Below, in pieces: positions 1,456 to 24,125 of a DNA stretch of 64,000 nucleotides. Every line of letters starts with the position of its first letter. Position 1 is the stretch's first letter. Under the pieces are notes generated by a model, which was not told where the DNA came from, made no database searches, and saw nothing but the letters and a program-made list of their open reading frames with translations. The position numbers and the translations under genes are program-made. This DNA comes from Guillardia theta CCMP2712. Lineage: Eukaryota; Protista; Cryptophyta. The DNA lies in NCBI RefSeq assembly GCF_000315625.1, contig NW_005434610.1:235698-299697 (forward strand), read 5' to 3'.

Positions 1456-2739
1456 CTTCAAGTCTTAACGACGGTGCCTGATCCCTTCCTGATGACGCCT
1501 CGGAGGAATGCAAGGAATCCAGCGCAGGCGGACTGAACAGGTTCTCCTCTGCGCTGTACCCTGCTGGGCTAGGTTTCCATGGCTCTTGATCGGCACAGAT
1601 GTCAGATCCTGCGAATCATGGTGAATCTATCAGACGAGACATGCGAACATGTCATTGTCTCGTTCCTCTGCCTCGTGGGCATCAGCAACTTCCTGCCTCA
1701 GCTATCTAGAGGTGTTTTGACCTCCATCACACGATTTACACACACTCATGAACTTCAAACTTTTCCTCCGCCTCCCTCACACACCATCCGATGCTCTGAT
1801 ACGTCCTAGCTCCCACAAATGAAGTCCAGCGCACTCGCTCACTTGATCCTTCCCGGTATCCCTTGCTCCACTTTCACTCCCGAGCACCACAATTCAGCTG
1901 CCCCGATTGCGCCTTCCTTGCGACGCCCTGTCCCACACCATCACAGCCATCATCACATCTCCCTTCAACTGCTCTTCATGTACTCCTGCTCTTCCTCCCC
2001 CTCCTCCTCCTCCGCTTCTACATCTTGTCGCTGCTCTTTCATATCTCGTATGCTTGCCGGCATTCGGGTAATGTTTCGCCATGGGGCAAGTGATCAAAAG
2101 GTAGTAGGGTGGTACAAGATTGGCCTTGCATATTGGGGGTAGGGGTTTGTGACTGGGGGGTCCATGACGTCATAGCACGATTGTGTACCGGTTATTTGTA
2201 TTGACTTTTCGTGATTGATACAGGGTGGGTCCAAACTTTAAGGGGTGGTATCGTATTTGGATAGGGTGATGGGATTGCAATCGGGTTTAACAAATGATGG
2301 GGTAGTGTTCGGAGATTACGGAAACAGGGGTGGTGCAGGTAAATAGTAGGTAGGGTGGTCAAAAGGACCTTGAAGCTACTGGGTGGGGGTGAGGGTACTC
2401 ACCCCTCCCCTCCATATGGTGCAGAAGCTCATCATTACCCCACAAATCTTGCGTAAAATCAGGGGTATTTTGAGTTCAGAGCACCCCCCAGCGTCCTACC
2501 TGTAGTAGTTTGTATGGTAGGGCTCAGATTGCTGCAGTACTAGTTACCGTTGGGGTGTCCAGGTTAGTGACTGCAGGGTAGGGGTCATACACCCACCGTA
2601 ACCCAAGTCAATCTAACAAGGGAAAAGGCAGGGTGAAGAAACTGAGAGGGTACTTCAGTACCCCCCCTCTTTGATATTGTACTGAGATGCAACCCCCTTG
2701 CCGCCGGCAGGAAGTTCGAGGATTTTGGTTTAGGGCCTT

Positions 2740-3135
2740 GGCCGGGCCCGCGACCCCGGCGCCGGGCCCGCCTGCCCGGGCCACCGCTGCCAGTCCGATC
2801 ACCGGGGCCCGTTGTCAGCCGGAACTTGACGATCAACGATCCTGTCTTTTGCCTCCTCGCCTCTCCTCATCGTCCTTGTACTGATTGGCAAGTAACTTAC
2901 TACGTGACTAAGTTGACAGTGACTAGTAATGCCACCGTCGGTCTTTTCTGTGACCCGGCGCGGCAGCCCCCACTCATCACTGGGTCTTGAGTCTGAGTCA
3001 TAGTAATCGGCCAGTCGGACTCCGAAGCCTCCGGTGGGCCCGGGCCCGGCCCGGCGAGCGGAGCCTCAGTCGTCACTGAGTCACGTGTGTGGCCCGGGCC
3101 CGGCCCGGGCTGGGCCCGCCGGGGGCCGGGCGATA
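2740..3135. promoter_or_regulatory. GC-rich palindrome-dense core of a divergent intergenic region
   Basis: Dense GGGCCC/CCCGGG/CCGG and ACTGAGT/GACTC words between divergent genes. GGGGTAGGGG-type tracts lie to the left and CCCTACCCC tracts to the right. Confidence 0.5.
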
Positions 3136-3835
3136 ATACTCAAAGGGAACTCTCATCTTTTATCTTCTATTTGTTTTTGGATGACACCACCTACTTGGTC
3201 ATCACCCTACCCTACCCCCGCCACTATGATGAGAAACCTCAATCTGTACCATCAGGAATGTAGACTTTCTTTGCCGAGAAGTACCGGTCAATGTTGACTC
3301 CATGGAACAAGTACCCCTTCTGCAGTAGACTCTCCACGCCACCCTACCCCCTATTCTGAGTCTAAAAGGTGCCGCCATGCTTGGTAAGGGCGCCAGAAAG
3401 GCATGGAAGGTGAGAGAAGCATTGTACCTCCTCCTCCTCCTCCTCGTCGTCGTCGTCCACCTCGTCCTCCTTTCCTTCTCCTGTCCTTCTCCTGTCCTTC
3501 TCCTGTCCTTCTCCTGTCCTTCTCCTGTACTTCTCCTGTCTTTCTCCTGTCCTTCTCCTGTCCTTCTCCTGTCCTTCTCCTTTCCTTCTCCCCTGATGCT
3601 CGTTTCCTCATTTTCACCAATCTTCCGCTTCTCCTTTTTTCGTCATCTCCCTCAGCCTCTTCCCGTTTCTTTTCTTTCCCTTTCGGTGTATTCATGTCAA
3701 ACACTATTAGCTACATCTACCGAATATTTCTAGTGCTCTCTTTCGTTTTGCTGACTGTGATCCTGCATAGCGCCTTCTCCATGCCTTCTGGTAAACCCGA
3801 ACGCTTAGCACCCGCACTCCTTCCAACGCCGAAGG

Positions 3836-6281
3836 ATGCGCGCATGGCTTACAGTGCTCTTTGCTCTCACTTTCGTCATCTTTTGCAGCTCAGATGAGAC
3901 GAGGACTGCAGACAGGCCTCCCTTGGGATGGTCGTCGTGGTATGGCCTCGGAAAGGAAGACGGTTGGCCGCAAACAAACGAGAAAACGATCAAGGAGATT
4001 GCTGGAGCCATGGTCGCGACAGGACTGCGAGATGCAGGATACACCATACTCCATGTCGACGACTCTTGGCAGTCCACAACTCGTGAAGCAGGGAAGGGAC
4101 TGCAAGCGGATCAGGCCAAGTTCCCTCATGGAATGAAGGACGTCGCAGACTTTCTTCGAGCACTCAACCTCACGCTGGGCTTGTATACAACGCCCGGACA
4201 CTTCTCTTGCGCGGGAGAGGCGGGGAGCGGGCAGCTGGGGAGCTATGGGCACTTGCAGGAAGACATCGACTTGTGGGTGGGCGAGTGGGGTGTGGGGTAC
4301 TTGAAGAACTGCATCTGCAACACAACCACCTCCATGCGCAGGACGGCGTACGCTGATGTCAGAAGGGCCATCGACAGGGCCCTGACAAGACGAAGGCGAG
4401 TGGATTTGACTCGGAAGGCTCCTCTTGCGATCTGACATGTATGTGGACAGTAAACGGAAGGACAGCGTAATCTACGAATGCTCGAACTACATGGATGCAC
4501 CATGGAGGAACGGACAGGCAAGCTCTCGCTGCTGATGTGCTCAGGACGAGCTCACTTCCTTTCCCCATTTCAGCACGAGTACTGCAATGTCTGGCGTGTT
4601 AGCAACGACGTTCCAGTGAGTCTCATCTCCCGCTCTCCGACGTCCCTGCACCGCAGCAGTGGACAACCTTCTGATCCACTCACTCTCACGTTTGTCAGGA
4701 TAACTTCGACGGGTGGAACAAAGCCGTGGATGCAGTGATGAAGAACGACGTCAACAGGCTTGCGGGACTTGGTGAGCGTACAGGCACACGTGGGGGTAAC
4801 TGCAGAAGGCTCATGTGCGGTGCAGGAGGAAGCTATGGGGCGAGGTGGAGCTCCTTCGACTTCTTGCAGGTGAGCCTTCCTTCCTCTTCCTCGTTGACAA
4901 GTTCTTCTTCTCCATCTGATCGTTGGTTCAGATTGGCTCCAAAGGACAAACTCTGTCAGAGTATCGAGCGCAGGTCTTGCTCCCCCCCCCCCCCCCGCCC
5001 TCCATTTTCCCCTCCTCGTTCCTCGTTCCTCGTTCCTCGTTCCTCGTTCCTCGTTCCTCGTTCCTCGTTCCTCGTTCCTCGTTCCTCGTTCCTCGTTCCT
5101 CGTTCCTCGTTCCTCGTTCCTCGTTCCTCGTTCCTCAATATCTCTTCTTCCTCTCGGGTTCCTGTGAGAGCCTCCCTCTGATTCGACCCCGTTCCCGCAT
5201 CTGTTTCTCGTCTGAAATTCTTGCCGCTCTGACGGTTTCATGCATTAGATGTCACTCTGGTCCATCCTTGCAGCTCCCATCTTCATCGGAGTCGACGTGA
5301 GGACGATTTCCAAGGAGGCGCTGGAAATCTACACCAACCCAGAGGTACATCATGGAGGAAGGAGAAGCGGAGAATGGCTGAATCGTCTCTTTCCTCTCCT
5401 CTCCCTCTGTCCCTCTCGTCACGCCCTCCTTGTCCCTCCTTTTCCTCCTCTCCTCCCCATCTCGTCCAGGTTCTGGCGATTAGTCAAGATCGTGATGGGA
5501 TCCCTGGATTCCGGATTTCTCGAGATGTTAAGGTCAGAGACAAACTCTCTTGCACTTCTTCACTTACACCTGCCGCGTGCAGTCAAACTTGGATGTCTGG
5601 GTCCGTCCATTATCGTGAGTCGTCTCGAGGGAGAGGCAGGGGATGAAGAGAAGGTGGAGGGAGAGGCAGGAGAGTTGCTTCCTGGGAAGGAAGGGGACAG
5701 GGTGCGAATGTTTGAGAGAGGAGGAAGGGAAGGGAGGCTGAGGTATTTGCTGACCTTCTCAACGCATAGGGAGCGTGCAGATGGTGAAAAATTGCACTAT
5801 CGACGAGCAGCACTGCTGCTGTTGAACCGTTCGGGGAAGCGAAGGTGAGGGAAAGACGAGCCGCCTGTCTCCCTCCTTGACTGGACGTGCCGGACAGGAC
5901 GATGGGGGTCAAGTGGAGCCAAGTGGCGAAGGGGAAGGGGATGGAGAGCTGGAGGCGGCGGAGCAAAGACTCCGTGGTTCTCGTCCGAGATGTCTGGAGG
6001 AAGCGAGACTTGGGGATGTTTGCCAAGGACTTTGAGATCGAGGTACGACTTGTGATGCGTCTGTGGAGGAAAGGAGGGGAGGAGAAGAGAGCTTGTGAGA
6101 AAAGATAGAAAATCGAGGTGGGAGAATTGAAGAAGATCTGCTGGCCAAAAATCAAGAGGGGGGAGCAGCAGTTACAGTAACCTGTCACGTTGCATTCACC
6201 GAGCTTTCATAGGTCGACCCGCATGCTGGCGTGATGTTGGTGCTGCGCGTGGAGTTGAAGGAGACTTCTCAGCCCTGGTAA
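3836..6281 (+). CDS. Secreted GH27 alpha-galactosidase-like protein (nucleophile Asp replaced)
   Basis: Signal peptide, PPLGWSSW, GLRDAGY..VDDSW, KFPHGM, LGLY, WGVGYLK, WRVSND, SLWSILAAPIFIGVDVR, YTNPEV/LAISQD and C-terminal VRDVW...VDPH beta-sandwich motifs. Stop at 6279-6281. Confidence 0.85.
5013..5136 (+). repeat. (CCTCGTT)n heptamer microsatellite, about 17 copies, intronic
   Basis: Directly visible tandem 7-mer. Confidence 0.95.
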
Positions 6282-6533
6282 GCCGAGTGGGCCCCCCTCG
6301 TTGCCCTTGCATGATGACATCACGCAGCGTCGGGCTGACCATGCAAGAGATCTTGTGCAACACTTTCGACGACCAACGGCTGAATCTTCAGTGATGACTT
6401 TATTGTTAGTGTCAACCATCTACTTCGACTGTACGCTGTCTTGTTGATGCGTCATGAACCGTTGTCGCCAGACTCATCCGCGTTCTTTACCCTCCTTCTC
6501 CTCCTCTCTACTCCTCTACCTTGCTCCCTCCCT

Positions 6534-7277
6534 TCACGCCCAGCTCGGGACATCGTACCTCTTGACAGGGCTCCACGACACTCGGAGCGGGTCAGCGTTC
6601 TTGAGCTGTAGGAATGCAACGCTCAAGTCTGCCCCTCTTGTCCTGTCTGCTGCTGCATCTACGAAGCCTCTCCACTCGCTCGACGTCCTCCTCCTCCACT
6701 CGGCCACGTCGCCCGGGACTGGGAAGCGAGTCCCCTCTTCCTTCCTGTGAAGTTCTCGCGCCTCAGCCGACTGCCGCCACTCTTCTGCTGCGTTTGCCCT
6801 CCACTCGTGGAGGCTCTTGAAGGCGCAGGGGCCCCAACCTGCTTCCTCAGAGGCGTCGAGGCTGCGAGACTGGGTCGATGCCCTCCACTCAAGCGCTGCC
6901 TCTTTGCGCCACGAGGCGATCTTGACGCGGAAGGAGTCGCGGCTTGCCGTCTCTTGTCCGCCGTTATGGACGGCGGCCTGGAGCAAGAGAGCAACAAATG
7001 CCGGGAGGAGGAGTGAAGCGACCTTGTAAGGCGAAGAGGAAGAGCTGCGGGGGAGCGGGGCTTGTTCTTGCACCTGCTCATGTCGTTCCTGTTCTGGCTG
7101 TTGATCGTAGCTCGAGACCTGTTTCTCTTCTGAGGTAAGGACGACCTTCGAAGGTGTCTTGGAAGGCTTGTCGACGACTGGAGATCGTACGAGGTTGCTG
7201 TTGATCACCGACAGAGGCCTCCTGCTCCTTAACTTGGGCGTCAGGATAGTAGAGGGACTGTTCTCGTTGTTCTCCAT
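6534..7277 (-). CDS. Hypothetical single-exon protein with one hydrophobic segment and Trp-spaced repeats
   Basis: Open frame from ATG 7277 (MENNENSPSTIL) to the stop at 6534, with hydrophobic VASLLLPAFVALLLQAAVH. A promoter-type block lies upstream at about 7500-7800. Confidence 0.6.
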   Translation of the reverse strand: MENNENSPSTILTPKLRSRRPLSVINSNLVRSPVVDKPSKTPSKVVLTSEEKQVSSYDQQPEQERHEQVQEQAPLPRSSSSSPYKVASLLLPAFVALLLQAAVHNGGQETASRDSFRVKIASWRKEAALEWRASTQSRSLDASEEAGWGPCAFKSLHEWRANAAEEWRQSAEARELHRKEEGTRFPVPGDVAEWRRRTSSEWRGFVDAAADRTRGADLSVAFLQLKNADPLRVSWSPVKRYDVPSWA

Positions 7278-7589
7278 CTTAGCACAATGAGCAAGAGTAC
7301 TCGAGGTCTGCTCTGGGTACAAGGGAGGCACAGGAGACGAAGGCAGGTGGAGGAGCAGTCCAAGAGACCAGCAAGGGATCAAGGAAGCTGCGAGGGGTCC
7401 GGCAGGAGCTGGAGTGGGGGGAGAGAAGGAGGGGAGGAGGGAGGGAAGGGCGAAGGGGTGGTGGGGTACCAGAGAAACTGCCGTTGAAGAGTTTCTGAAG
7501 AGGACCCCTACCGTTGAGTGGAAAATGGCTGAAGTCCAGAGGTGGGTGGGTTTGAGTAACTAAAAAAGGCTTAGAGTAAAGAGAAAGTC

Positions 7590-7800
7590 ACTTTGGACTC
7601 CGACGCTCCGGCCCGGCCGGCCCGTCGGGTGACTTAGACTGACTCAACTTCGAGTAAACTTTAGTTGATTGTCGGACCGTACACTGAGTGCGGGCGGGCA
7701 ACGGGAGTCGGCCTGAGTCGAACGGTTCCACTTGTCGGAGGCCAGCCTGAGCGTTGAATCTCATCATGCGCGGCACCTAGAAGTGCAATTTGAAAATTGA
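7590..7800. promoter_or_regulatory. Palindrome-dense upstream core
   Basis: CCGGCCCGGCCGGCCCG, GACTCA, ACTGAGT and CCTGAGTC words upstream of the 7277 gene. Confidence 0.45.
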
Positions 7801-7941
7801 AGTCTCGGAGGCTCAGCCGAGTATGATCATCGATGAGAGATCGAGACATCAGTCAAGGCTGAGACTTCATAGTTTCGAATTTACCAAGATTTACTACAAA
7901 CGACGATCATCAGGATGCAAATTATCCATTCTCAGCCACAC

Positions 7942-10281
7942 TTAAGGAGAAGGGTTCTTAGACACAATCATCTCACTAATCTCGGAAGCTAATAGTGATT
8001 TCAAAACACTCACTCCATCAGATTCGGTCCACACGGCAAGGACTCTCCTAACAGCAAGCTCAACTTCAGATGGCATGTCATAACCAGGGCGCATCTGTAC
8101 TGAAGGATCAGAAGTCTGTAAAGGCAATGGGAGGATCAATGCTCACCATCAAAGTGCCAATCTCGTGCAAGGTGAGTCCTGACAAGGCGGCTTTCTGAAT
8201 CAAAGTGGTCCCGATAAACAGGGTGATCAAGCATTCTTCCGGCAGACCCAAAGTGGTCTTCAACATTTCCATCTCTTCATCGGCATTCAGATTCTCAATG
8301 AACGACAAGGTGTCGGCACTGAAAGGTTTCTTAGCTTGAGGCCAGTGCAACCAACAAGTGTTCACATCCTGCGCTCAACATCAGAACTTTGGCACTCAGC
8401 AAGCAAAATAAATTTGCCACCTCAAGGTGTTTGAAGGATGGAAGCACGTAACCGTGGTCAATAGGAATCAGAGAGACTTTGCCAGAATGATGACGATTGA
8501 CCAGAAGGTTGTCCGAGTTCCGATCCATGTTGAACAAGCGGACATCCAATATGCCAATGTAATGAACCTGTTCGACATCCAACAGCGAGGTGCCAATATC
8601 TTCCGCTGTGCAGTCATGCTCATGGAACCTCTGCAACGAACCGACTTTGATCTGAACCTCAGCTTCAGACTTGGGCAGCAGAGTAGTATGAGAGATTCGA
8701 AGCATAGTAGTGCAAGGAACCTTGGCACGACTTTCATGGTCCAACAGATATGCAGCACATTCCCGAGCAGCTCCTCCACCAACTTTGATTCCACTTTTCA
8801 TTTCAGAGTACACGTCCATCATGCCAGTAAATCCTTTCGGATTGAATGGAGCATAAGGTTCCTCATCAGTGGGCTTGAAGATCGCGGTCTTGGCTCCAGC
8901 AGCATTTCGCATGATGTACGTACCACCACAGCAGTTGTCCACCAAATCTCCATAATCGAAATCAGAGAGCCTGGGCAACTGCGGCCGGCGATCCCAATCA
9001 CAATCCTGAGAATTACAGGTCCATTCAGAATCGAAAGACTTGTTTTCCAGGACTTCTGGTGCATGACCATATCGCAGACCACCTTGTACTTCCAAAACCA
9101 GCTGCTCTAATGCACCGAGCTTCTGCCTCTGAAGGAGAGGGATGCACATTTCTTTTGCTCCACGATCCCGGAATATTATGTGCAACTGGGAAGAGTAAAC
9201 TCCCCCGCCTGCTTGTATTCCGTGCAGAAGATACGTGTCCAACATGCCTTCAGCCGATGGATTGGACGGAGTCTTTTTGATGTCGTTATAGAGCATTCCA
9301 ATCATGCCACTACCCTCACATTCGGTGCTGCATTCGTAGATATCGAAGTACGAGGCATCCGAGGTAGGGGTCGTCTTAGCCGACAATATTGAATCCCACG
9401 AGCACTCGGTATTTAGCTCGCTGAGTTGGCAGTTGTTCCACTTGCCATTGTCAAGATCATTGTTTGTGGCTTTGATGCAGCCGGGAATGGTGATAGGACT
9501 TACACTTGTGATCAAGGCCGAAGAATCCGATACAAGAGAGTTGTGTCGAGGACTACTCGATGGACTTGTGACACATGGGCTCGTCACTGTATTGACTTGA
9601 GAAGAAGCAGTTGACGTCGTGCTTCCATCAATGCCTTCCATTTCTTCTCCAAAGAACGGCTGCTCCTCCTCCTGAGCACCTAACTGAACGGCTTCCGGGA
9701 GGTTCTGAGCTGCAAGACTCATGTCTGTGACAGATGCTAGGAAGAAACTGACCTGCAACCAACGAATTTATGGGAATATCAATCAAATAATGCTTCTTAC
9801 CAATTCAGTGACTCTAGGTTCAAGAGCAAGACAAACATTGGGCTGAGCACGTACGAAATCCCTAACCTGTTTCAACTTTCTCAGTACCAGGTTGTTTACA
9901 AACCTGGCTAAATACCTTCATATCGTCCGCGCACTCCTCCCCGTTGAAAGAAATCTGCTGGATATGTGACGGAATGATCCGTAGCCGATTATGACCCTGG
10001 TAAGATTGGATTCTTTCCTTCAATTCAAGGAAAATGGAATCAGGCCGGCATTCGACTCGCAACATTTTATCAAGGAGCAAATCCTTGACCTTCACTTGAA
10101 TATGGACACTTTCCTGTACAAGACGCTCAAGCTCTGAACGTTTGCGGGGTGGCGACTTGAAAATGCTGACACCCAAGACATCTTCCTTGAACAGAGTCGA
10201 TGACGAAACTGATCGCTTGAGTCTTCCAGCACACTGGGACATGGAAGTATTGGGAATGTCAACTCCTGTTTCGAAGTTCAT
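7942..10281 (-). CDS. Type II phosphatidylinositol 4-kinase gamma-like protein with an N-terminal ubiquitin-like domain
   Basis: GGTY..FKPTDEEP, ARECAAYLLDH, GSLQRF, IGILDVRLFNMDRNSDN, LIPIDHGYVLP, WLHWPQAKKPFS. The first exon resembles a UBL fold (IQVKVK...LKERIQ...ISFNGEECADD). Confidence 0.9.
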
Positions 10282-12761
10282 GATTGAAAATCAAGGTAAA
10301 TTTTATATGATAGAGTTTCTTTGGTAATTTCTCTCGAATTTTTTGTTTTGTTTTTCTTGTTTGTAGAATCTCAGGATGTGAATTCCCGAAATTGCAAATT
10401 GACTATATACACGATTCAGTTCTGAAATTGTTCTGCACAGAAAGGTGCTGACTGAAATGAAAATTGTTCCAATAAGATACAACTTGGAAATCCGAATAAA
10501 ATTCTATTTCTTCTTCTTGATACCAAGAACGGCAGAGCACAGCAGCTGTAAACTATATCCTGCCTTGAGAGGGGTGAAGAAACCCCACGTTTTGTGTGAG
10601 ATCAAAAGTACATGTTATAAGAAGTCGGCGTTTCGCGCACTCGCACGATTTGCCGTATTCCTAATATGACATAGGATTCATTTCAGTTGCACATATAGTT
10701 CACTTGGAACGAATGCCACAAGATTCGAGGAGGGGGTGCGGCCCCTGCCGCAACCCCCTTGCACTTGTTGTCAGTCAAAAAGTTGCCTCTATTGGCAACC
10801 TTAGCCAACCTGCCGAGGAGAGACTGCAGGAGATCTGTATGGCCTTCTTTGGGAACAACTCGAACAGATAGACCGGTGATTATTACAGTCAGTTGCAAAA
10901 CAGCTCAAAACTGGTCCTCCTCGATTCAATCATCCAATGCTTTCACACCGTCTGAAAGAGTCGGAAGGGTAAGAGAGTTCGAAGAAATCACTCAGACTGT
11001 GTGAACGAAGCTCACAGACAGAACAATAATCCTGTAGGTTCTCGAAAGAACCGAAGCAACTCAAACCCTGTCCTCACAGAGCCAACAAACCAGACTTGCG
11101 CTGCCTTCCACAGAACGAGTGTAAGACAAGAGAGATATCCGCTGAGGACGTCAAGACTGGCAGTGGTAGCTGCCAGTGTGCCCAACAAGCGCGCGGGAGA
11201 GGATTGGAGACGCCGCCACGGCGGGGTATGAGAATGCAGAGCGAACAGGAGTGAGTGCAGATTGAGGGGGTAGGGGTGAGGACCCCCTGGTGGGGTAGGT
11301 TGGACGTGGCAACTTTTCGTACCTTCGAAATATTTCGTACGTTTGCAATTACGGTACAATAAATCTGTATTGATGAAATTGATTTCAATAGTGTTTTCAC
11401 TACAATTAATAACAACTAATATCTCTTTGGTACAGATGCGGAGATGATGTGTACCATAAGTTTTGACCTTATTTTAGGTAATTTATGGTAGTTACATTTG
11501 TATGTAGAATTATCTTTGTGGTAATAAAAATGAGTACAAAAATTACTACATCGGACTGCACAATTGTACAAAGTACGGTGGTACAGCCAAGAGTGCGAGA
11601 TTGCTCTGGAATACGGGGAGGGTGTGTTGACCTCTTTAAAACCATAAAATTTAATATCACAATTTGCAAGATTTCTTGGTAGCACATGTTGGTCTAAAAA
11701 CACATAACTTTGAGTATCCGTATGGATATGTGGTAAATTTAGATTTATTTGTATTTATTATGACAAAAATAAAAGCATTTGTATATGATCAAATGGGTCA
11801 ACACGATCAGAGTTACAGAAGAGTTGTTGATGAGCATCCACCCCCTTATATTTCCCTTATACTATCACCCCACCCACCCCTTCTGGATCACGTCGGCCTC
11901 CGATCAGATGTAGGACCGCGATTCTTTGGGTACCCCTACTCCCCCCGCCAGGGTCCCTACCCCATCTTCATCCTCGCCTCGAAACTAAAAGTACCTGGTC
12001 TTTTTCTTGACGTACCCCAGATTCGGGACCTCCACCCGTACTTGTTGGAGTATTGCAACCCGTGGTAGCCAATGGGGTCCTCAATAATCGAAAATATCAA
12101 AAAACAATTGTTTTAAACCAAATGTCATCTGCCACACCCCCACCCCCTGAAAGCCCTGCCCTCTTGGGCCATGAAGAAACACCCTACCCACGTCTGATCT
12201 ACAAAGGTTTGCACAAAGGGATGGGTGTATGGGTTCAACCACCCCTGTTGTAAACGATAATTTGGTTTTAATTAGACTAATTTTATTTCTGTACCATGAT
12301 TGGTACCATGGCAGGCTTCGGTATACAATCTCAGGGATCTCTTCCGGGGTCCTGTACAATCTCACTGTACTTCTGGCTGCCAAAAGAGGGGTTTTCATTG
12401 AATTGCAACTCAAGTATCAGGGGTATTTCTATATCCTTGAGGAGGTAGGGTACCACAACGCGGAAACTGAAAACCTCTATTTTCGAAAAATAGAAACAAG
12501 ATCTATTCCGGTGCAAAGGTACAATTTGGACCACCCCTACCCCTCATTTCAAACCTTTGGTGAATGCTCATCGTACCCACGAGCACATTCTATATATGGC
12601 TGTAAGTTCATCTTGCTGCCTTTCTTGTTATACCCCCACCTACCTTTTGTAGAGATCAAGTACCCGTTTATTAAAGAATCTAACTGAGGCGGACTTGAAG
12701 ACCTTCTCTCAAAAGTCAACAGCCGATCCTACCAGGAGAAATCTCTGTTCGATCGGCGCCA

Positions 12762-15597
12762 ATGGACACGACCCAGGCTGTTGCGAGAGTAACTCAAGCA
12801 ATGAACGAGTGGCTCCTCAAGGACGACGGGGTTGAAAAAGCACAAGCTTTAGTCCGTCTGAGACAGGCAGAGCATGATCTGGCTGTGCTTGAAGGAGCTG
12901 AGAGTGAATCTCCCACTCTTACCAGACTGCTTGTCAAGCTGAAGCATGCAGAGCATGCCCTGGCCAAACGAGGAGGAGACAAGCAGAAGGTTGCCGAGGC
13001 ACTAGTAAAGCTGAGGGATGCAGAGCATGCCCTGGCCAAACAAGGAGGAGACAAGGAGAAGATTGCCGAGGCACTAGTGCGGCTGAAGGATGCAGAGCAT
13101 GCCCTCGCAGTAGAGCAGAGGAGAGCACAGCATGCCCATGCCCAAGATGAAGGAAACCAAAAGAAGATTGCCTTGGCACTAGTGCGGCTGAGGGAAGCAG
13201 AGCATGCCCATGCCCAAGATGAAGGAAACCAGAAGAAGATTGCCTTGGCACTAGTGCGGCTGAAGGAAGCAGAGCTTCAAACAGTTGCCAATGGAGGACA
13301 GGGAGATCTTGATCGTCTTTCCAAAGAGCTCGAGACTGCAAGGCTTGCACTCCTCTCGCAGCAAAATGATGGAGATACAAGCAATTTCTTTTCGAGTGAG
13401 TCTGTACACTTGCCCGGAATGCTAAACCCTAACTCCATTGCTGGCAGTATTGAGCGAGTTTGCCAATCAAGTTGGCGATGTGAATCAGATTTCCAAGCCC
13501 TTGCAGGAATGCCTTGAAAAATGCCTGGACGCTCAATGGACGCCGACATCACCACGTGTGAAACCAAGCAAGCGATTTAGCGATTTGAACCCCATTAGCA
13601 TGCTGGTGAAAGGCAAGGAGAATACTGAGGAGTCTTACGTCTGCCTTATAGAAGCTTGTTCTGGGAGTGGGAAGTCGCTTTGCGCTGCTGATCACTTTGT
13701 TCGGAACGTGGACGACAGCATCTATTTTCTGTTCAGCCTTGTGGGGCATGACGGAGACTCCCAATTCAAGGTGCAACCCATCTACAGGCCTTTGCAACAT
13801 ATCACGCGACTGATCAACAAGGCACTCGACTGTGATCTTTGCAACTTGACAACGCGATTTGCCGGATCAAAGGAATCAGATCCTTTGACCGCTTTGAATT
13901 TCAACTTCGCTAAACAGTTGGCTAGGGAAGATCCAAAGTGGTATGTGCTGGGAGTCCTCGGCTGGATATGGCATGAGTTGCCCAATATTTCTCCAGTCTC
14001 TATAGCAGAGGCAGCTGAATGGAAAAGGCGGTGGGTGCTTGTGGACGAGGTGCTTCCTCCTCGTCACGACGATACTAGCTTCTTCTCAGTAATTGCTAGG
14101 CTGGTATTCTTCAAGAGATTGTTAGCGAACTCGCAAATCAACTGTATCATGTTAGGGACGAGCACTTTGGTCATGAATATCGTGCAGGTCTCGAATATAT
14201 CTGAACATAGTCGCCAGACTGGTCAAATGATGCTCTGCTTGACACATCGCTCTCTTCCGGAATGCATCTTGCCGTCAGACGGAGACGAAGAGATCCTGGT
14301 GAGGATTTTCGGAAGGACATCAGTACCTAAGATACTGGACTGTGGAAATCCAATGCTCTGCACCCTTTTCTTGTCTCAGTACAGATCAGCAAATGACAGT
14401 ATCAAGAATGCTGAGGCGCACGTTGTCCTCCGAAGTCTCTCAGCTTCGGTGTTCAATCATGTAAAGCATTCGCGCAAACTGAGTTGGAGCTGTGAGTCGA
14501 GATATTGCATGTTTCAGATTGCTGCACACGAAGCTGTCTCCCAGTTGCACATCTCCAAGGGTTTTGCTTCTCTGAACGTGTGGGGAAATGATCCGCCAGC
14601 CCGGAATAGCCATGCATCGACCGTAATGGTTGACTTGAATGAGGAAGGGATTCCTATGATTCGAGGTACCGCTCTTGCGCAGCTGACCTCGAGGTTTCCT
14701 CCTGCAATGCTTGATCCTATCACGACAGCTGTTGGTGCTGGAGGGGGGAGGCCTTTCGCTTATGTCTCAGCTCTTAAGGTCTTGCAGAAGATTCACCTGG
14801 AATCAATGTCCTCATATGACCCTCTGAGCGTGGATGCTTGGAGGCGAGATGGGAGTCTACTGGAGTCGTTCGGGGCGGTAGTCATGATGATCAGCAGCTG
14901 GTCTTCTCCTCAGGACCTGCTGAAGAACATCGCTTTTCATTGCGGTTTGGCAGATGACAGAAGTGTAGACGCTATTCTTGCCTCTGTAGCAAACAGAGAA
15001 AGCTTCGTGGAAATGCTTACCTCTTGCGTATGCAACCTAGTCCCTGTAAAAGAGAGCGATCAGGAGCATTGCGATTCCGCGGCTTTGGGCTTCTACACAC
15101 GGAACAAAGATAGCGAAGGCAGGGACGGGACTTTCGCGGGACCGGCTGTTCCAAACAAGCAGAGGTGGAAAGGTGGAGCACAGTTCAAGAACTTGTCCGA
15201 TCCCCTTCAACCGAGTCAGTTAAACAGCGTAATCTTCAAGCTGTTGTCGCACAATCTAGATGTCAATGTGTGTATGGTGTCGGAGATTTCACCAAGTGCG
15301 CATCAACTGGACTTCGTAACCAGAAGTTCCACCACCGAATGGCTATTGTTGCATCTGCGGAAAGGTAAAGGCTGGTCTGCAAGGGTTCCTCCAGTTGTGG
15401 AACCAAACAAGAAAAGAATGAAACGCACTGACGACGAAGGCAGGGCTGAGACGGGTACACGTAGGAGAATTCTAATGCTTGTGGAAGTGGGAATGCACAC
15501 CAGCCCATTCAGCGGTTCGGCTGGCCTCGATTCCAAAGGTGGTGCACCTGTGTCGGAGGAAGAACTCAGCGACGAGGACTTGCTCGTTCTGGAATGA
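12762..15597 (+). CDS. Crinkler/RHS (CR)-type protein: helical-repeat N-terminus, P-loop NTPase and PD-(D/E)xK-like nuclease; exons 12762-13395 and 13448-15597, about 927 aa
   Basis: A 52-nt phase-1 intron (GTGAG...CTAAC...CAG, 13396-13447) joins the two overlapping ORFs in frame. Walker A ACSGSGKS, Walker B WVLVDE, and CRN-like motifs QPIY, LGT, SR, FPP..DP, DG..LE, RDG..QFKN. NLS-like PNKKRMKR. Confidence 0.8.
12945..13275 (+). repeat. 72-bp (24-aa) coding tandem repeats
   Basis: AEHALAKRGGDKQKVAEALVKLRD / AEHALAKQGGDKEKIAEALVRLKD, and A(Q/E)HAHAQDEGNQKKIALALVRL twice. Each pair is near-identical at the DNA level. Confidence 0.9.
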
Positions 15598-15949: not shown

Positions 15950-17448
15950 CGAAAATTCCTAAACTTCCTCGGTCTGTGTTGTCTTATGGAACAACATCAG
16001 TACCATCGTCCACGTCATCAACCTTGTCGTCAGGGAGTTCCACACCTTGTTAGTCCGTCACAATTGTTGCGAGTCATCGAAAGTATCTGTGGCTTGAAGG
16101 CTTGGAGGTGCGACGTGATTGATCAAGACGTATGATCTGACCTCAGCTTTGAAGATCTCCCTTCCTCCGCCTTCCCCTGTCCTTCTATATGCTGTTTTAG
16201 GCTTGTCTTGGCTGTTGGACCTCTCGTTGATGCAAGCAATGTCGGTGAAGCACCAAGATGTCCATCATGGACATCACAACTTTCAAACAGATAGAGGCTT
16301 GCACCAGTCAAGCATTGCTCGATACATGTCAAGCTCGAGACTGTCGCCAATCCAGCTTCATCTGCAGGACATCCCAGCATTGAAGCCACATCTTCAATCA
16401 GTTTTCACCTCATTTGAAGATACCATGTGAAGATAGATTCACTGGTCTGAGATCAAATGACAACAAAGCAATTGATGTGATGTACACGAAAGCACTTTGA
16501 TATTCTCTAATGTTGCATAAGACGCGTTGCATACCCATGGATTTGCTAAGCCTCTTTACTCAAATCTGCTTCGTACATGAGCAGATCAGTTAGGAGCAGG
16601 ATCAAGAAGGAAGCATTACGCTCTGGGTGTTGCATGGTCCCTTCACTTAACTCATGTTCCAGTTACAATGAACACAGAAACAGAGTTAAGATGCACATTA
16701 CAAACCATTACATGTACTGAACAACTGCTGCTAAACTTCAAAGCAACGATGTCCACACTCCTCAGCTCAACTCGGTTTTCTCACAACTGTCGAGATGGTG
16801 TCAGAGTCGATCTTGTCCGAATTCAGGGTGAATAGGAAGCTTTCCTGGTTGTGCTCCCCGGTCAAGGCAGTATCCGTTTTGTGTAGCTCAATTTTGTTAA
16901 CCTTGCGTCGAGGAGAAGCCAATGATTGATTGGACGACTGCCATGCTGCAAGTTTACCTCCTTGCGTCGAGGAGAAGCCAATGATTGATTGGACGACTGC
17001 CATGCTGCAAGTTTACCTCATGAAAACTGTTCACCATCGGCGTCCTCACCATGAACACCATTGCACTCGAATCGCATGTTCGGACTCAAAACGCTTCCCT
17101 CAGTCCATCAAGTTCAACTTCTATCTCTCATGTTTGAAGGTCTTGACATCAATCTTCTTGCCTCACGATGTCAAGGACGAGACACACGGGGGCTACAGGC
17201 TGATCCGCATCGAGCGTCAGGTCCAAGGGCGGTGACTCGAACGTCCCTGAGCATGGGGAAGGGAGAAACTCGATCTCGCAACGTTTGGTAACTAAATTCA
17301 CCGGACAAGCGAAAATGGTTGGAAGCAAGTAAGGAGGGGAGGAGGACGATGGGGACGTCAAGTGATAGCAGTAGTGCAGAGCGGAGAAAGAAGAAGAGAC
17401 TAGGCAGCAGGAAAGACAAGCTCTAGTAGAACAACTATCTCCTGCCAT
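15950..17448 (-). CDS. Hypothetical multi-exon gene, model uncertain
   Basis: Short exon-like frames (e.g. VNKIELHKTDTALTGEHNQESFLFTLNSDKIDSDTISTV) separated by about 50-nt GT-AG segments, with a hydrophobic N-terminal frame. No recognisable domain. Confidence 0.4.
16902..17019 (-). repeat. Perfect 59-bp tandem duplication (GAG plus a 56-nt intron-like unit)
   Basis: Two identical copies at 16902-16960 and 16961-17019. Confidence 0.95.
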
Positions 17449-17649: not shown

Positions 17650-20288
17650 ATGGGAAGGTTCCGGATCCCGATAGGGTCGGGATTCTTTCTCCTGCTCTTG
17701 GCTACGATTGCAGCATACGAGTCTTCGAAGCAGTCCTACAGCAATGAAGCAGCGGTCGCCTACAACAAAGGCATTGAATCATCGAGGGGAGGAGATCTGC
17801 ACGCAGCAGAGGCCCGCTTCCGGGAGGCAATCCGCTCCTCGCCCAAGTTCTTTGAGGCTTGGATGGGGCTTGCGCAGCTCCTGCAGGACAGTGGAAGGGG
17901 CAGAGAAGCAGAAGATTGCTACAGCAAGGCTGTGAAGCTCGTGCCCAACTCGGTGTCAGCTGTGAACGCGCTTGCATTTATCCACGTGGAGGCGGGAAGG
18001 CTGCAGGAGGCTGAGAAGAAGCTGAAACGAGTGAAGGAGATGCTTCCTGCCTCTGCGTCTGCCCTGCTCAACCTTGGAGCGATCCAAAGGCAGATGGGGA
18101 AGCTGGACGAGGCGATCAAGAGCTACGAAGCAGCGCGGAGGTTGGAACCAGACGAGGCTAAAGCATCCTACAACCTTGGAAACGCTTACTACTCCAAGAG
18201 GGAGTACGAGAGGTCGATCGCCAGCTACATGCAGGCAAGCAGGCTGTCGCCGCAGCATGTGGACACGTACAACAACATGGCGAACGCGATGAGAGACTCG
18301 GGGGACAAGCGGGGGGCTCGAGGGGTGCTGGAGACAGCGATGAAGATTGATCCCAACAGTGTGGCCGTGCTGTGCAATCTCGGAGTGCTGTACGCTGACC
18401 TGCAGGAGCTCGACAAGTCCTTGGAGGTCTTGATGGCAAGCTCTGAGAGAGGCGGGTAGTCAGGAACATGCGCAGGTACTGGAGCAAGCCCACAGGCTCG
18501 GACCAGACGTCCCGGAGGTCATCTGCTCAAGAGCAAACTCACTGCACTCGCTGGGAAGATCTGAGGTGTTGTTGTTGTTGTTGTTGTTGATGATGATGAT
18601 GATGATGATGATAATGATAATGATGATGATGATGATGATGATGATTATGATGATGACTGCAATGATGATCAAGTGTTTGAGAACGACAAGTATGTGATGA
18701 TGAGCGATGTCATGATAGTGAGTACGTGGTGAAAGTAAGGATGTAATGACGATGATGACAATTACAATGCTTGTTGGATGGGCGTGATGTGGAAGCAGGA
18801 AGGAATATCCGAGTACAGGAGAGTGGTGAAAGCATATCCTCTTGTCGCCTCCTACAGGAAGGGACTTGCAGGCAAGATCTCCTTCTATTACCTCTGCTGT
18901 ATTTCCTTCTCCTACCTGCGTGAATATCACTACAACATCACTATCATGCATACCACAATATGCTCCCATCATCGTCATCGTCATGATTTCCTTCATCGTC
19001 GTTCTCTTCCTCACCCTCTTCCATTATTGACCTACATCCTCTTCGTGTCCTGCAAATGCTGCATAAAAATGACGCTATTGTTTACCAGACATGCTCATGT
19101 CGGCTGGGTTTGATGAAGAGGTCAGCTTTACATCATCATCACCATCTTCATCATCATCTCCATCATCATCATCATCATCATCATCTCCATCATCATTATC
19201 ATCATCATCATTATTATCATCATCATTATCATTGTCATCATCATCACTCATGTACCATCTTTCACGATCCATGCGTTAGCTTGACTGCAGGCCATTCAAG
19301 AGTACCAAGTCCTTGCGCAGAGCAATGATCATGAAGTTGCGGCAAACTCCATCGGGCAGCTTGCAGCCTTACAGAACAAGAAGGGAGAGCACGGGGGGGC
19401 AGAGCAGAGCTACAGGAAGTCGATAGCTATGGACCCGACCAATGCTCAGATGAGGATGAATCTTGCTGTCATCTTGGCCGATCAGGTGGGTGAAGGAAAC
19501 CTGTCGTGGTTGAGGGAGAATGAGCGCTGGAAGGAGTGGAAAAGCGGGGGGGGGGGAGCTGGGGAGGAAGGAGGAGGAGCGTTTGGAGGGAGGTGGTGGG
19601 GAGGAGGAGCGCTAGCAGGGAGGAGGTGGGGAGGAGGAGCGCTAGGAGGAAGGGGGAGGGGGGGAGGGGGGAGTGCGAGAGTAAGCTGAAAGGGGGCGGA
19701 GGTTGAGTTTGACAGTGGACGGTGCAGCATCGCATTAAGGAATCTTTCGCTCTCTTCGAGGAGGCGATCGTCATGCGGTAAGACGCCGTGATATGCTGCT
19801 GAACTCGAATGATTGCAACAGATGTGGAGAGAGAGAGTGTGTGTGTATGTGTGTGTTGTGTAGAGGAGATCTCTTCTTGCTAGATGGTCAATTCTTGCTG
19901 GATTGCTAGATTGCATTGTTTCTCTCGTTCCTCGCTTCACTTCCCTTCTCGTCCCTTCCCTTCCCCTCACTTCCCTTCTCTCTTCTCCTTGAGGGTGAGA
20001 AACTTATCTCATACGTTGCTGCAGGCCGGCAGACCATCTCACCCTAAGTAACTTCGGGACGGTGTTGCACAGGACGGGAGAATTCGAAAGATCCGCGCAG
20101 TTGTACCAGAGGTGGGAGATGACGTAGACGACGACCACGACGATGATGATGGAGATGATGATGATGACGAGCACGATGATGATGGTGATGATCATGATCA
20201 TGATCATGATCATGACGATGATTACGATGACAATGACGACGACTATGATGATGATGATGATGATGACGACGACGACGACGACGACGAC

Positions 20289-20322
<34 letters not shown>

Positions 20323-20738
20323 GCTGTGGTAATGGTGGTACTCAAATCATGCAACGTAGGGCACTCCAACTTCTGCCAGGATCAGCTAATTTGCATTACA
20401 ACTTGGGGAACTCGTACATGGATATTGCAATCCAGGTCAGTTGCGGAAGACAACGGTGCTTGCTCTGAAAGAGTAAGAGTACATGTCTTCGAATCGCTCA
20501 TACCTCAGTGCAGAAAAACTATTCTCTCCTCCGATCAGCGATTCAAGAGTACACAGAGTGTCTATCGATTCAGGTGCAACTCTGCAAGGAACATCAGAGG
20601 TCGATGACGCTTGTTCAGGTCACTTATCCTGGTGCGATGAACAACCTTGGAAATGCGCTCAAAGAAAGCGTAAGATGCTAATAGTGACGGGGGGCGGGGT
20701 TGGTAGGGGAGCGAGGATAGACGAGGACGAGGACGAGA

Positions 20739-20769
<31 letters not shown>

Positions 20770-23734
20770 ACAGGGAGAGGACGAGGACGAGGACGAGGAA
20801 CAGGGAGAGGACGAGGACGAGGATGAGGAACAGGGAGAGGACGAGGACGAGGACGAGGACGAGGATNNNNNNNNNNNNNNNNNNNNNNNNNNNNNNNNNN
20901 NNNNNNNNNNNNNNNNNNNNNNNNNNNNNNNNNNNNNNNNNNNNNNNNNNNNNNNNNNNNNNNNNNNNNNNNNNNNNNNNNNNNNNNCTCCTCCCTCCCT
21001 CCTCCTCCTGGCCAACCAGCGTCATCCTCCTCTTCCTCCTCTCTCCTCCCTCCTCGCCTCCTCCTCCCTCCCTCCTCTGCTCTCTCCTCCTCTTCCTCCC
21101 CTCTCCTCCTCCACCACCACCACCACCACCTCTCTCCTCTTCCCTCCCTTCCTCCCCTCCCCTCCCCTCCCTCCCCTCCCCTCCCCTCCCTCCCATCCTC
21201 CCCTCCCTCCCCTCCCTCCCCTCTCCCTCGGGTCTTATCCTTATGGAACTTAACGGGGGCAGTTGGAAGGCATCCTAAGGAAGCAGCTCAAGTGGTACGA
21301 GACGAGCGATGGAGGGGAGGCGGAGCAGAAGGAGAAGGCAGAGGATGGCAGGGCAGCAATGATGAGCAAGAAGAAGGTTGGAGAGACTATAAGGAGCGCA
21401 TCTGCCTCTTCTTACTGACCTGCTCTCAGTCCGTCTCCTGTCAACCCTTCCATGCCCTGCTCTACGCAGAGCTCGATGGAGATGTAATGATGACACGTCT
21501 GCTCCTGCTGCTCTTCCATGTGACGGCGGGTGTGCAGGTGGTGCTGAAGGTAGCTCAATCGTTTGCTCATCAAGTAGAATTCTCCGGTGATTGCATCCTC
21601 GGTGGAGCTGCGGGGATTTGATGAGTTTTCCTTTGAGCAGCAAGACACTTCAGACATTTCTTCGAGGCAGCAACGAGGTTTGATAGATTTCCGGCTTTCA
21701 ACGACAACAAGATCAACGTTGGCTACCTCTCTCACGACTTTGGGGTACGGAAGAACCTGTGAAAACAGCTCACGATGTCAAACTCATGTGAACAAGTTTT
21801 CTCCCACTTGTTCACTACATCAGTTCATGTGATCTCTTGGATGAAGAAGCGTTGCAGGCAAAACATCTCAGCAATCCTTTGAAACATGCTCCACCTCAAA
21901 CAAACATCTCTCATTTCACCTCTCACATGTATGATATGTTGCAGGATCATCCGACGGGGCATCTTTTCAACGGCGTTCCTTTCCTGCACCAACAATCCAA
22001 GAGGGTTCGAGCGTTTTATTTCTCCCTCAGGTAAAATTCTGCCTCCTCCCTCCTCCCTCCTCCCTCCTCCCTCCTCCCTCCTCCCTCCTCCTCCTCCCTC
22101 CTNNNNNNNNNNNNNNNNNNNNNNNNNNNNNNNNNNNNNNNNNNNNNNNNNNNNNNNNNNNNNNNNNNNNNNNNNNNNNNNNNNNNNNNNNNNNNNNNNN
22201 NNACCTCACCTCACCTCACCTCACCTCTCCTCCTCCTCACCTCACCTCTCCTCTCCTCCTCCTCTCCTCACCTCTCCTCTCCTCTCCTCACCTCTCCTCT
22301 CCTCACCTCACCTCTCCTCTCCTCTCCTCTCCTCTCCTCTCCTCTCCTCTCCTCTCCTCTCCTCACCTCTCCTCTCCTCACCTCTCCTCTCCTCTCCTCT
22401 CCTCTCCTCTCCTCTCCTCTCCTCTCCTCTCACTTTGCTGCTTCTCTCTTCAGTGGAGCCGCCTACATCGACTTTCTAGTCTCAGACAAGATCGTCAGCC
22501 CGCCGGAAGCAAGAGCCCTCTACTCAGAGCACCTTGTCCTCCTCCCTGGCACCTACCAGGTAGAGAAGCTGGGGAAGACGAGGAGAGAGGGAGAGGTATG
22601 GAGGAGGGGAGCAGGGGAAGACAGGAGAGAGTCAGAGGAGGAGTGGAGGGACAGAGCAAGAAGGAGGGAGAGCCAGAGAGAGAGAGAGTCAGGCTGGGCG
22701 GGAGGTGAGGGAGAGGTGAGGGAGTGATGTGGGCTCAGGTCAACGACTACAAGGTTGGCTTCAAGCATCTGAAACAGTCTCTGATGAGGGAGAAAGAGCT
22801 TCATACGAGGTACCTCCTCCTCCTCCTCCTCCTCCTCCTGCCTCCTCCTGCTCCTCCTCCTGCTCCTCCTGCTCCTCCTGTCTCCTCCTCCTCCTGCCTC
22901 CTCCTCCTCCTGCCTCCTCCTCCTCCTGTCTCCTGTCTCCTCCTCTGCTCTCCTCCTTTCTCCTGCTCCTCGCTTCACTTTCTCCTACCTTACATTCCAC
23001 ACCTGCTGTTTCGCTACCTCAGGCAATCTGGGCTGGCGTTCCCCTAGTCACCTGGCCGGGTGTAGCGATGGCGTCAAGAGTAGCAGCAAGTCTACTGGTT
23101 GACCTCCTTCCCTCTTCCTCTCTCCTTCTTCCCTTCTCCTCCTCTCCTTCTTTCCTTGTCCTCCTCTCCTTCTTTCTTCTTGCTCCCTTGCTTCTCCTCT
23201 CTCCTGTCTCCTCTCCTCCTCCTCTCTCCTCCTCCTCTCTCCTCCTCCTCTCTTCCTGCTTCTCTCTCTTGCTGCTCCCATCTCCCTTCCCTGTTCCTCT
23301 TTGTTCTCTTCCCTTCACACCCTGAACTTTTCCTCCTCCCAACCTCCTCCTCTACCCTCTTTCGTCTCCATCTGCTCACTTGACCTGCAGATGTCAACTG
23401 CGACTGTCTCTTGCCTGATTGCTCGCACGCAAGAAGACTTCCTCGAGCTCGTCTTCGCTCTCGCAATCTCCCACCACAGGAGGCGAGCTTTGCGACAGAG
23501 CATGTAACCTCTCTACAATCTCCTCCTCCTCCTCCTCCTCCTCCTCCTCCTCCTCCTCCTCCTCCCTCTTCCTGGCCATGACTCATGATCTCTCGCAGGA
23601 TGCAAGGCAGCGACCTCTTCGATACTGAGCGGTGGGTCAGCAGCTGGGAAACGAGTTTGCGCCTTATGGTCACAGCTGGGATGTATGCTGAGCGAGGGCA
23701 CGTTCCGCACATTGTTGCCCGTAGATCAAGTTAG
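17650..23734 (+). CDS. OGT: TPR-containing GT41 O-GlcNAc transferase-like protein with an N-terminal signal peptide; interrupted by gaps
   Basis: Many TPRs (YNLGNAYY, YNNMANAM, LCNLGVLY), then QPFHALLY, DHPTGHL, SGAAYIDFLVSDKIVSPPE..YSEHLVLLPGTYQ/VNDY, AIWAGVPLVTWPG..MASRVAASLL and LFDTERWV. Stop at 23732-23734. Confidence 0.85.
20867..20987. other. Assembly gap (N run); others at 22103-22202, 26257-26356, 29023-29122, 54130-54229 and 56174-56383
   Basis: N runs, mostly adjoining simple repeats. Confidence 1.
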
Positions 23735-23744
23735 AGGGCCTTGA

Positions 23745-24125
23745 GCGTACCCGGCCGACCACCGTGAGCCCGGCCCAAGTGCTCCGAGGCCCGGCGGCCT
23801 CACTGAGTCTTTAACTTAACTCAGTTGAGTAAAAAAGGAGTCAGCTCACACTTCAGTCTCGGACCGACGGTCCGACGGTCGCCGGAGCACCGGGCCGGGC
23901 CTGCCGGGCCTCGGGGACCAGACGTTACGATAATGTAACGGTGAATAGCAGAGCAAAATGAAACCACTGCCTTGTCGTTCTGAACCCACCCCTATGTGTC
24001 CGATGTTGACTACCCCACAAGTGTCACAGTACCCCCTACCGACCTTTTCTGTCAATATCTCGTGTCCTCATATGGGTACTTATGACCCCCTACCCACTTT
24101 TTACATGACCTACCCCAACTTCCGT
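23745..24125 (+). promoter_or_regulatory. Palindrome-dense core followed by a CCCCTAC tract upstream of the DC2 gene
   Basis: CCGGCCCAAG, ACTGAGTC and CGGACCGACGGTCCG, then repeated ACCCCTA/CTACCCC on the plus strand. Confidence 0.5.

Follow-up and report, generated by a model that had tools for sequence, protein, structure and literature searches.

Introduction

Bacterial antiviral STAND proteins (Avs-type) and other ATPase-nuclease defence proteins couple a nucleoside triphosphatase (NTPase) switch to a nuclease effector, and a repeat region in them possibly senses the trigger. Crinkler/RHS (CR) proteins are a described eukaryotic architecture of similar kind. As summarised from Zhang et al. 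(2016) in PMC5289972, the order NTPase, helix-turn-helix (HTH), restriction endonuclease (REase) is the commonest in the C-termini of Phytophthora CRN proteins, and CR proteins with alpha-helical headers, as well as CR proteins in free-living eukaryotes, are already reported. Here we describe a gene at positions 12762-15597 of a 64,000-nucleotide (nt) stretch of the cryptophyte alga Guillardia theta CCMP2712 (contig NW_005434610.1, positions 235,698 to 299,697 of the forward strand; hereafter the window), which an initial annotation had taken for a Crinkler/RHS-type effector. It was one intact two-exon nuclear gene, and the order that had been proposed for its product, helical repeats followed by a P-loop NTPase and a PD-(D/E)xK-like domain, was supported by motif and fold evidence. 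We consider that it probably encodes an intracellular, NTP-regulated protein of nuclease type, with repeats, an AAA+/STAND NTPase and a PD-(D/E)xK domain, belonging to a lineage-expanded genetic-conflict family that is either defensive or selfish. The family has no Pfam model; its members, from free-living eukaryotes, combine an NTPase of NLR/ORC-like type with a domain resembling restriction endonucleases.

Gene structure and annotation

The window ORF list held two open reading frames (ORFs) on the plus strand in different frames, 12762-13517 (251 amino acids, aa) and 13438-15597 (719 aa), which the initial annotation had joined through a 52-nt intron into a protein of about 927 aa. This model was borne out by the reading frame and by relatives alike (Table 1). 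Excision of the intron brought both exons into one frame of 928 codons including the stop, giving exactly 927 aa, and the stop at 13423-13425 that interrupts the downstream frame lay within the intron. The first ATG of the 719-aa ORF was its residue 55, downstream of helices conserved in the family, so this ORF is not a gene on its own. The intron position was the same in four related loci. Mapping proteins to their loci placed an intron of 47, 48 and 86 nt at the homologous position in the annotated G. theta paralogs P0005, P0010 and P0016, respectively; two of these shared the GTGAGTC donor of the window gene, and the peptides flanking their introns agreed with those at the exon 1 end and the exon 2 start of the window gene. 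In a metagenomic relative (L003), DNA identity of 72.5% ran straight across the intron, and both the two-frame layout and the GT...AG interval were kept. The exon 1 region was matched by the N-terminus of a further paralog, P0002 (tblastn, E 1e-9), an assembled transcript (L007) in which one continuous ORF led from the repeats into the core across the junction.

The gene lies at about 248459-251294 of scaffold JH993028.1, and the public annotation was compared over 20.8 kb of this scaffold, identical to window 7650-28459. GCA_000315625.1 annotated only the unspliced 251-aa ORF (ending at 13517) and no gene over the 719-aa ORF, which is why a homolog search with this core ORF returned no identical protein. 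The P0002-type locus was annotated merely as a 186-aa fragment, GUITHDRAFT_146424. This corrects a gene model of the reference cryptophyte genome: what is annotated there as a 251-aa 'gene' is no more than exon 1 of a gene for 927 aa. The ratio of nonsynonymous to synonymous substitution rates (dN/dS) between the window copy and its closest relative was 0.32, and the gene is under purifying selection.

Table 1. Parts of the gene and its relatives in G. theta. Positions are those of the window unless another sequence is named; residues are those of the 719-aa ORF (ORF2).
Feature	Sequence	Positions	Strand	Remarks
Exon 1, with start codon and N-terminal helical-repeat region	window	12762-13395	+	634 nt, 211 codons + 1 base
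Six A/L/E/K-rich helical repeats	window	12843-13316	+	about 24-35 aa each, core ALV(K/R)L(K/R)xAE; units in register; direct-repeat family D2
Intron	window	13396-13447	+	52 nt, GT-AG, phase 1, begins GTGAGT, ends CAG
Exon 2, intron-free core exon with NTPase and nuclease-like domains and stop codon	window	13448-15597	+	2150 nt including stop
AAA+/STAND-like NTPase module (nucleotide-binding domain, helical lid, winged-helix-like part)	window	13615-14697	+	residues ~60-420
Walker A, ACSGSGKS	window	13654-13677	+	residues 73-80
Walker B, WVLVDE	window	14032-14049	+	residues 199-204
PD-(D/E)xK (restriction-endonuclease-like) domain	window	14698-15507	+	residues 421-690
Helix glutamate E476, in LESFG (residues 475-479, 14860-14874)	window	14863-14865	+	E in 34/35 relatives; helix 52-66 of domain model
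Aspartate D563, in RDGTF (residues 562-566, 15121-15135)	window	15124-15126	+	D in 36/36; opens second core strand, 144-147 of domain model
QxK (Q582, K584), in QFKN (residues 582-585, 15181-15192)	window	15181-15189	+	third core strand, 158-164 of domain model; relatives ExK
Basic patch KKRMKR	window	15409-15426	+	residues 658-663, low-confidence loop (pLDDT <50, residues 655-672)
Family loci	G. theta			window gene; GUITHDRAFT_120867, 110897, 113579; P0002 locus; tandem triplet 104014/104016/104018
Triplet genes	L009 (G. theta JH992979.1:410088-433220)	2348-5244, 10001-13133, 17943-20841		products 717, 1009, 931 aa

Domain architecture

At the N-terminus, Tandem Repeats Finder resolved the helical repeats as two DNA arrays with a period of 72 nt, at 12936-13105 (90% matches) and 13119-13275 (94% matches). 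Paralogs carried distinct N-terminal arrays, some having none at all, which indicates that the repeat region changes quickly and agrees with the earlier suggestion of a multi-copy family with differing N-termini. Neither LFLAK nor an N-terminal hydrophobic stretch occurred in the translation; here too the initial annotation, which had described tandem helical repeats in place of LFLAK and a signal peptide, was correct. PADLOC matched exon 1 to GajB (E 1e-4), on a low-complexity helix.

The Walker A, Walker B, E...D...QxK and KKRMKR motifs listed by the initial annotation were all found at the places given for them, most of their positions being conserved in the family. Both Walker motifs were invariant in an 18-row cryptophyte alignment (A1), and their GK and DE were invariant in a distant set of relatives beyond the cryptophytes. 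An AlphaFold model of the 719-aa ORF reached a mean predicted local distance difference test (pLDDT) of 72 and a predicted template modelling score (pTM) of 0.73. Its NTPase part matched structures in PDB at E 2e-4 to 1e-2 over about 370-570 columns (Foldseek): the Dark apoptosome and Apaf-1 at 2e-4, and MalT, CED-4, Cdc6, ORC subunits and the archaeal ATPase 2qen at 9e-4 to 4e-3. Template modelling (TM) scores lay at 0.2-0.38, low values that reflect a different packing of the domains. As modelled, the layout of nucleotide-binding domain, lid and winged helix is that of STAND and ORC/Cdc6-type AAA+ proteins. Pfam AAA_22 matched weakly in 5 of 18 and 7 of 12 relatives, and AAA_22, AAA_16, ATPase_2 and TniB all stayed under the Pfam gathering cut-offs in family members. 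UniRef labelled one paralog 'helicase'; we rejected this label, as the fold found by Foldseek is AAA+/STAND rather than SF1/SF2.

Modelled alone from 36 sequences, residues 421-719 gave a more confident prediction (pLDDT 84.7, pTM 0.84) with an alpha-beta-beta-beta-alpha-beta core. A restriction-endonuclease-fold match for this domain had been set beforehand as a test of the initial annotation; matches were obtained, and they were weak. In the viral library BFVD the best was a 'Restriction endonuclease' at E 1.5e-3, followed by a CroV Mrr-domain protein at E 1.7e-2. The search against PDB gave nothing significant (best E 0.096), in a list mostly of the restriction-endonuclease fold that included MspJI, AspBHI, BamHI, AgeI, EcoT38I, EndoMS, AF1548, MUS81 and the Rpb5 N-domain. 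On the model, the glutamate on the first helix, the aspartate at strand 2 and the (E)xK on strand 3 form the canonical PD-(D/E)xK arrangement. Counts were made over a 36-row alignment (A3) of cryptophyte rows plus the distant set, in which the acid position of ExK was E in 33 rows, K in 2 and Q in the window copy alone, while the lysine was kept in 34 of 36; in the distant set the E, D, E and K of the signature were all four invariant. With Q at this second acidic catalytic position, the window copy may cut weakly or only bind. It also has S in the MLGTN motif where nearly all cryptophyte relatives have N. The KKRMKR patch, earlier called NLS-like, is present and could be a nuclear localization signal; it falls in a low-confidence loop whose equivalent in paralogs is K/R-rich yet variable.

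Copies and distribution of the family

Searching with the core ORF returned 17 homologs (E 1e-82 to 1e-246), all of them cryptophyte (G. theta, Hanusia phi) or unnamed environmental sequences. At least eight loci belong to G. theta, with pairwise identities of 36-99% across the family and of 38-63% between the window copy and the old paralogs; the gene is not a single-copy, slowly evolving ortholog, so that this test, set for the initial annotation, did not refute it. Within the window the gene was the single locus of the family, no second copy being found by tblastn. Otherwise invariant columns numbered 97, and the window copy deviated at three of these; members of the family deviate at 0-5, apart from one outlier at 11. 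Two other family loci are represented by transcripts.

The tandem triplet arose as a segmental triplication with units of 7.7-7.9 kb that are 95-98.7% identical. The lengths of its three products differ within the N-terminal repeat region. Each unit also carries an unrelated, divergently oriented gene of 105 aa; we rejected this as a conserved small partner gene, since it has no counterpart at the other family loci.

When 1.84 billion representatives were searched exhaustively with a profile, 57 matched, again all cryptophyte, chytrid or unnamed environmental. The distant set comprised proteins of 630-800 aa (E 5e-9 to 8e-4), one of them from the saprobic chytrid Rhizoclosmatium globosum, and a search from this chytrid relative added copies in Obelidium, Terramyces and Gorgonomyces, all named 'hypothetical'. 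The cryptophyte and distant sets aligned with an hhalign probability of 99.9% (E 6e-37, 497 columns), and the taxonomic spread, cryptophytes and chytrids, is patchy. A word-indexed search with alignment A2 added nothing, its only matches being two near-identical proteins, and sequence searches of PDB yielded P-loop noise only, whether the query was the single protein or profile A1 or A3. There was no tblastn match in plasmid and phage records, and no paper was found in a literature search on the family locus tags or on Guillardia with Crinkler.

The R. globosum relative (L010, MCGO01000019.1, 10001-12333) begins 26 nt past the stop of a same-strand Argonaute gene (6802-9974; ArgoN, PAZ, Mid and Piwi domains). 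A conserved Argonaute linkage was rejected, as the adjacency was seen in one chytrid and not in Obelidium mucronatum (L011) or G. theta. The Obelidium relative has a gene for a KDZ (Kyakuja-Dileera-Zisupton) transposase (L011, 1-398) about 10 kb upstream. On an environmental contig (L002), about 1 kb separates a distant relative, P0051, from an ORF of 1596 aa (5747-10537, minus strand) that runs without interruption and encodes reverse transcriptase and RNase H domains.

Surroundings of the gene

The neighbours are ordinary: a PI3/4-kinase gene, a TPR gene (269 aa) and, farther along the window, a fumarylacetoacetase gene. The initial annotation had suggested a recent insertion or a domesticated mobile element, for which the locus offered no support: no terminal inverted or direct repeats or duplications were found around the gene, DNA similarity to paralogous loci ended at the coding sequence, and paralogs of only 38-63% identity have an intron at the same place. 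Its remark that the gene has few introns among intron-rich neighbours held in part. In the family, 2-15% of the span of a gene was non-coding, the overall figure for neighbouring genes being 32%, and the core exon was intron-free in all paralogs, but some neighbours lack introns as well, the adjoining TPR gene among them. As intron poverty is shared across the family and by some of the neighbours, it is no argument for recent insertion; it argues for an old family trait and points to an intron-poor ancestor, for example through long-ago transfer or retroposition.

Several features of the surrounding DNA may be recorded. Between the gene and its TPR neighbour, a 59-nt unit is perfectly duplicated in tandem (window 16901-17018). 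Just downstream of the TPR gene are two long trinucleotide arrays, (TGA/TGT)n and (CAT)n, at 18554-18677 and 19119-19260, which pair as inverted repeats about 100 nt long (75-87% complementarity) and are followed by a G-rich 11/19-nt repeat at 19533-19667. Strand asymmetry was strong at 22001-24000 compared with the rest of the window (GC skew -0.34, AT skew -0.30). The AT-richest part of the window (GC 0.43) was 10001-12700, the 2.7 kb preceding the gene, which contains short ORFs without a Pfam match and, as its sole annotation, a 52-aa call.

Proposed function and alternative explanations

In the explanation that we propose, the protein of about 927 aa would be cytosolic or nuclear. By binding and hydrolysing NTP, its central module would switch or oligomerise the protein and so control whether the C-terminal domain binds or cuts nucleic acid. 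The variable, amphipathic helical repeats might serve as a surface for partner binding or sensing, and the family would act in genetic conflict, as a defence or a selfish system, and not in housekeeping. In favour of such a role are its multiple copies, the differing N-terminal arrays of paralogs and the patchy taxonomic spread. Several observations weigh against this proposal. No transcript of the window copy was detected with two exact exon-2 patterns against metagenome/transcriptome contigs (0 matches). Fold matches of the modelled nuclease domain are marginal (best E 0.096 in PDB and 1.5e-3 in BFVD), and Q in place of the conserved ExK glutamate leaves the catalytic competence of the window copy uncertain, as judged from its residues. 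Pfam, NCBIfam and PADLOC gave nothing above threshold for both ORFs and 39 relatives, and no conserved partner gene was present among the family loci examined. If the proposal holds, the family is a lineage-specific addition to the ATPase-nuclease conflict systems common to prokaryotes and eukaryotes, and the Crinkler-type architecture gains context outside pathogens; if it is false, this is an ordinary uncharacterised expanded gene family. A bolder version, to which we give a small but real chance, would make it an undescribed innate-immunity family of cryptophytes and chytrids in which a STAND/AAA+ switch, equipped with a rapidly diversifying helical-repeat sensor, turns a built-in nuclease of Mrr-like type against DNA of viruses or transposons, as a eukaryotic counterpart of Avs-type defence. 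The Argonaute adjacency in at least one chytrid may be cited alongside it, and PADLOC returned 0 families for the core ORF and merely noise for distant relatives.

Alternatively, the protein might be a true Crinkler/RHS member, its module sharing ancestry with the C-termini of oomycete CRN and trypanosome RHS proteins and acting as a toxin delivered against other organisms. The order P-loop NTPase, HTH, REase fold is present by fold and motifs (the HTH solely through alignment to the winged-helix regions of Cdc6/ORC), and it is the commonest Phytophthora CRN C-terminus according to PMC5289972. Helical headers and free-living hosts are also reported there for the class, so that neither is the exception that the initial annotation had seen in this gene. 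Polymorphic N-termini and nearest distant relatives in chytrids, a group known for CRN-like genes, would fit as well. The membership that had been proposed nevertheless found no backing in sequence. Pfam Crinkler and RHSP did not match the window protein or any of the 39 relatives, with no hit at E up to 1 in 30 of them, and Pfam Crinkler was absent from exon 1 and from the long relatives; no recognised CR header (Ubl, that is ubiquitin-like, with LxLFLAK or other), no signal peptide and no apparent sign of secretion were found, and the exhaustive profile search returned no relative named CRN or RHS by any source. We regard membership as unlikely and unproven; the window protein works like, and may descend from, a Crinkler-type module. 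About as doubtful is a loss of catalysis in the window copy, which would then bind or regulate active members of the family; its Q where 33 of 36 rows have the ExK glutamate, its S for N in MLGTN and the negative transcript search could suggest this. It has kept the helix E, the D, the K and both Walker motifs, its frame is intact over 927 codons, and its three deviations at invariant columns fall inside the family range. PD-(D/E)xK enzymes, moreover, include active members with a non-acidic residue at the ExK acid position, which counts against inactivity.

Two further explanations are less probable than these. The gene could be part, or a recent derivative, of a mobile element, a recently inserted ATPase/nuclease pair resembling TniB/TnsC and TnsA. 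This would draw on a weak TniB match in one distant relative (E 1.3e-3, below cut-off), on the reverse transcriptase/RNase H ORF and the KDZ transposase near two relatives and on the intron-free core exon. We think it very unlikely in view of the missing terminal repeats and the end of similarity at the coding sequence, and of neighbours that are ordinary and include no integrase or transposase in the locus; the paralogs are old and yet share one intron position, and the only young copies came from a segmental tandem duplication that carried an unrelated gene along. About as improbable is a housekeeping role in DNA replication or repair, with an ORC/Cdc6-like loader and a repair nuclease combined in one protein. 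Foldseek did match Cdc6 and ORC subunits, and the basic patch suggests a nuclear protein, but Apaf-1, CED-4 and MalT match as well as ORC. Patchy distribution, variable copy number and the lack of orthologs in most eukaryotes among the 1.84 billion representatives also speak against such a role, and a dN/dS of 0.32 with 36-63% identity between paralogs of the same genome is unlike housekeeping genes. The genetic-conflict reading is the one that we retain.

Comparison with known systems

Crinkler/RHS proteins, as described in PMC5289972, resemble the window family in the order of NTPase, helix-turn-helix-type linker and restriction-endonuclease fold, in a variable N-terminal header, in multiple copies and in chytrid and free-living hosts. 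The window family differs from them in showing no sequence relationship by Pfam or profile search, no Ubl/LFLAK and no evident sign of delivery into another cell, and its header is a tandem helical repeat array. With STAND and ORC/Cdc6-type NTPases (Apaf-1, Dark, CED-4, MalT, Cdc6, ORC4 and PABY2304, which is PDB 2qen) it shares the fold of nucleotide-binding domain, lid and winged helix, Walker A and B, and a conserved S-R after the sensor-1 region. It has none of their CARD, TIR, WD40, LRR or TPR parts; its output domain is the C-terminal nuclease or nuclease-like domain, and its repeats are N-terminal. That C-terminal domain resembles, in the modelled alpha-beta-beta-beta-alpha-beta order of its core and in the placement of E, D and (E)xK, the Mrr-like and type IV restriction endonucleases (MspJI, AspBHI, BamHI and the CroV Mrr-domain protein) that head both fold searches, and from which it is set apart by the marginal matches, the lack of a Pfam Mrr_cat match, a long helical insert ahead of the core and QxK.

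Tn7/Tn5053-type systems offer another pairing of an ATPase with a nuclease partner: TniB/TnsC is an AAA+ ATPase of the same broad clade as the NTPase discussed here and is paired with a nuclease of restriction-endonuclease fold, TnsA. The link to the family is the sub-threshold TniB match of one distant relative; in the window gene both parts are fused in one polypeptide, and there is no transposase, element end or target-site duplication. Avs-type and other bacterial ATPase-nuclease defence proteins follow the same logic as the window family, which differs from Avs-type defence in its domain order and in its eukaryotic host.

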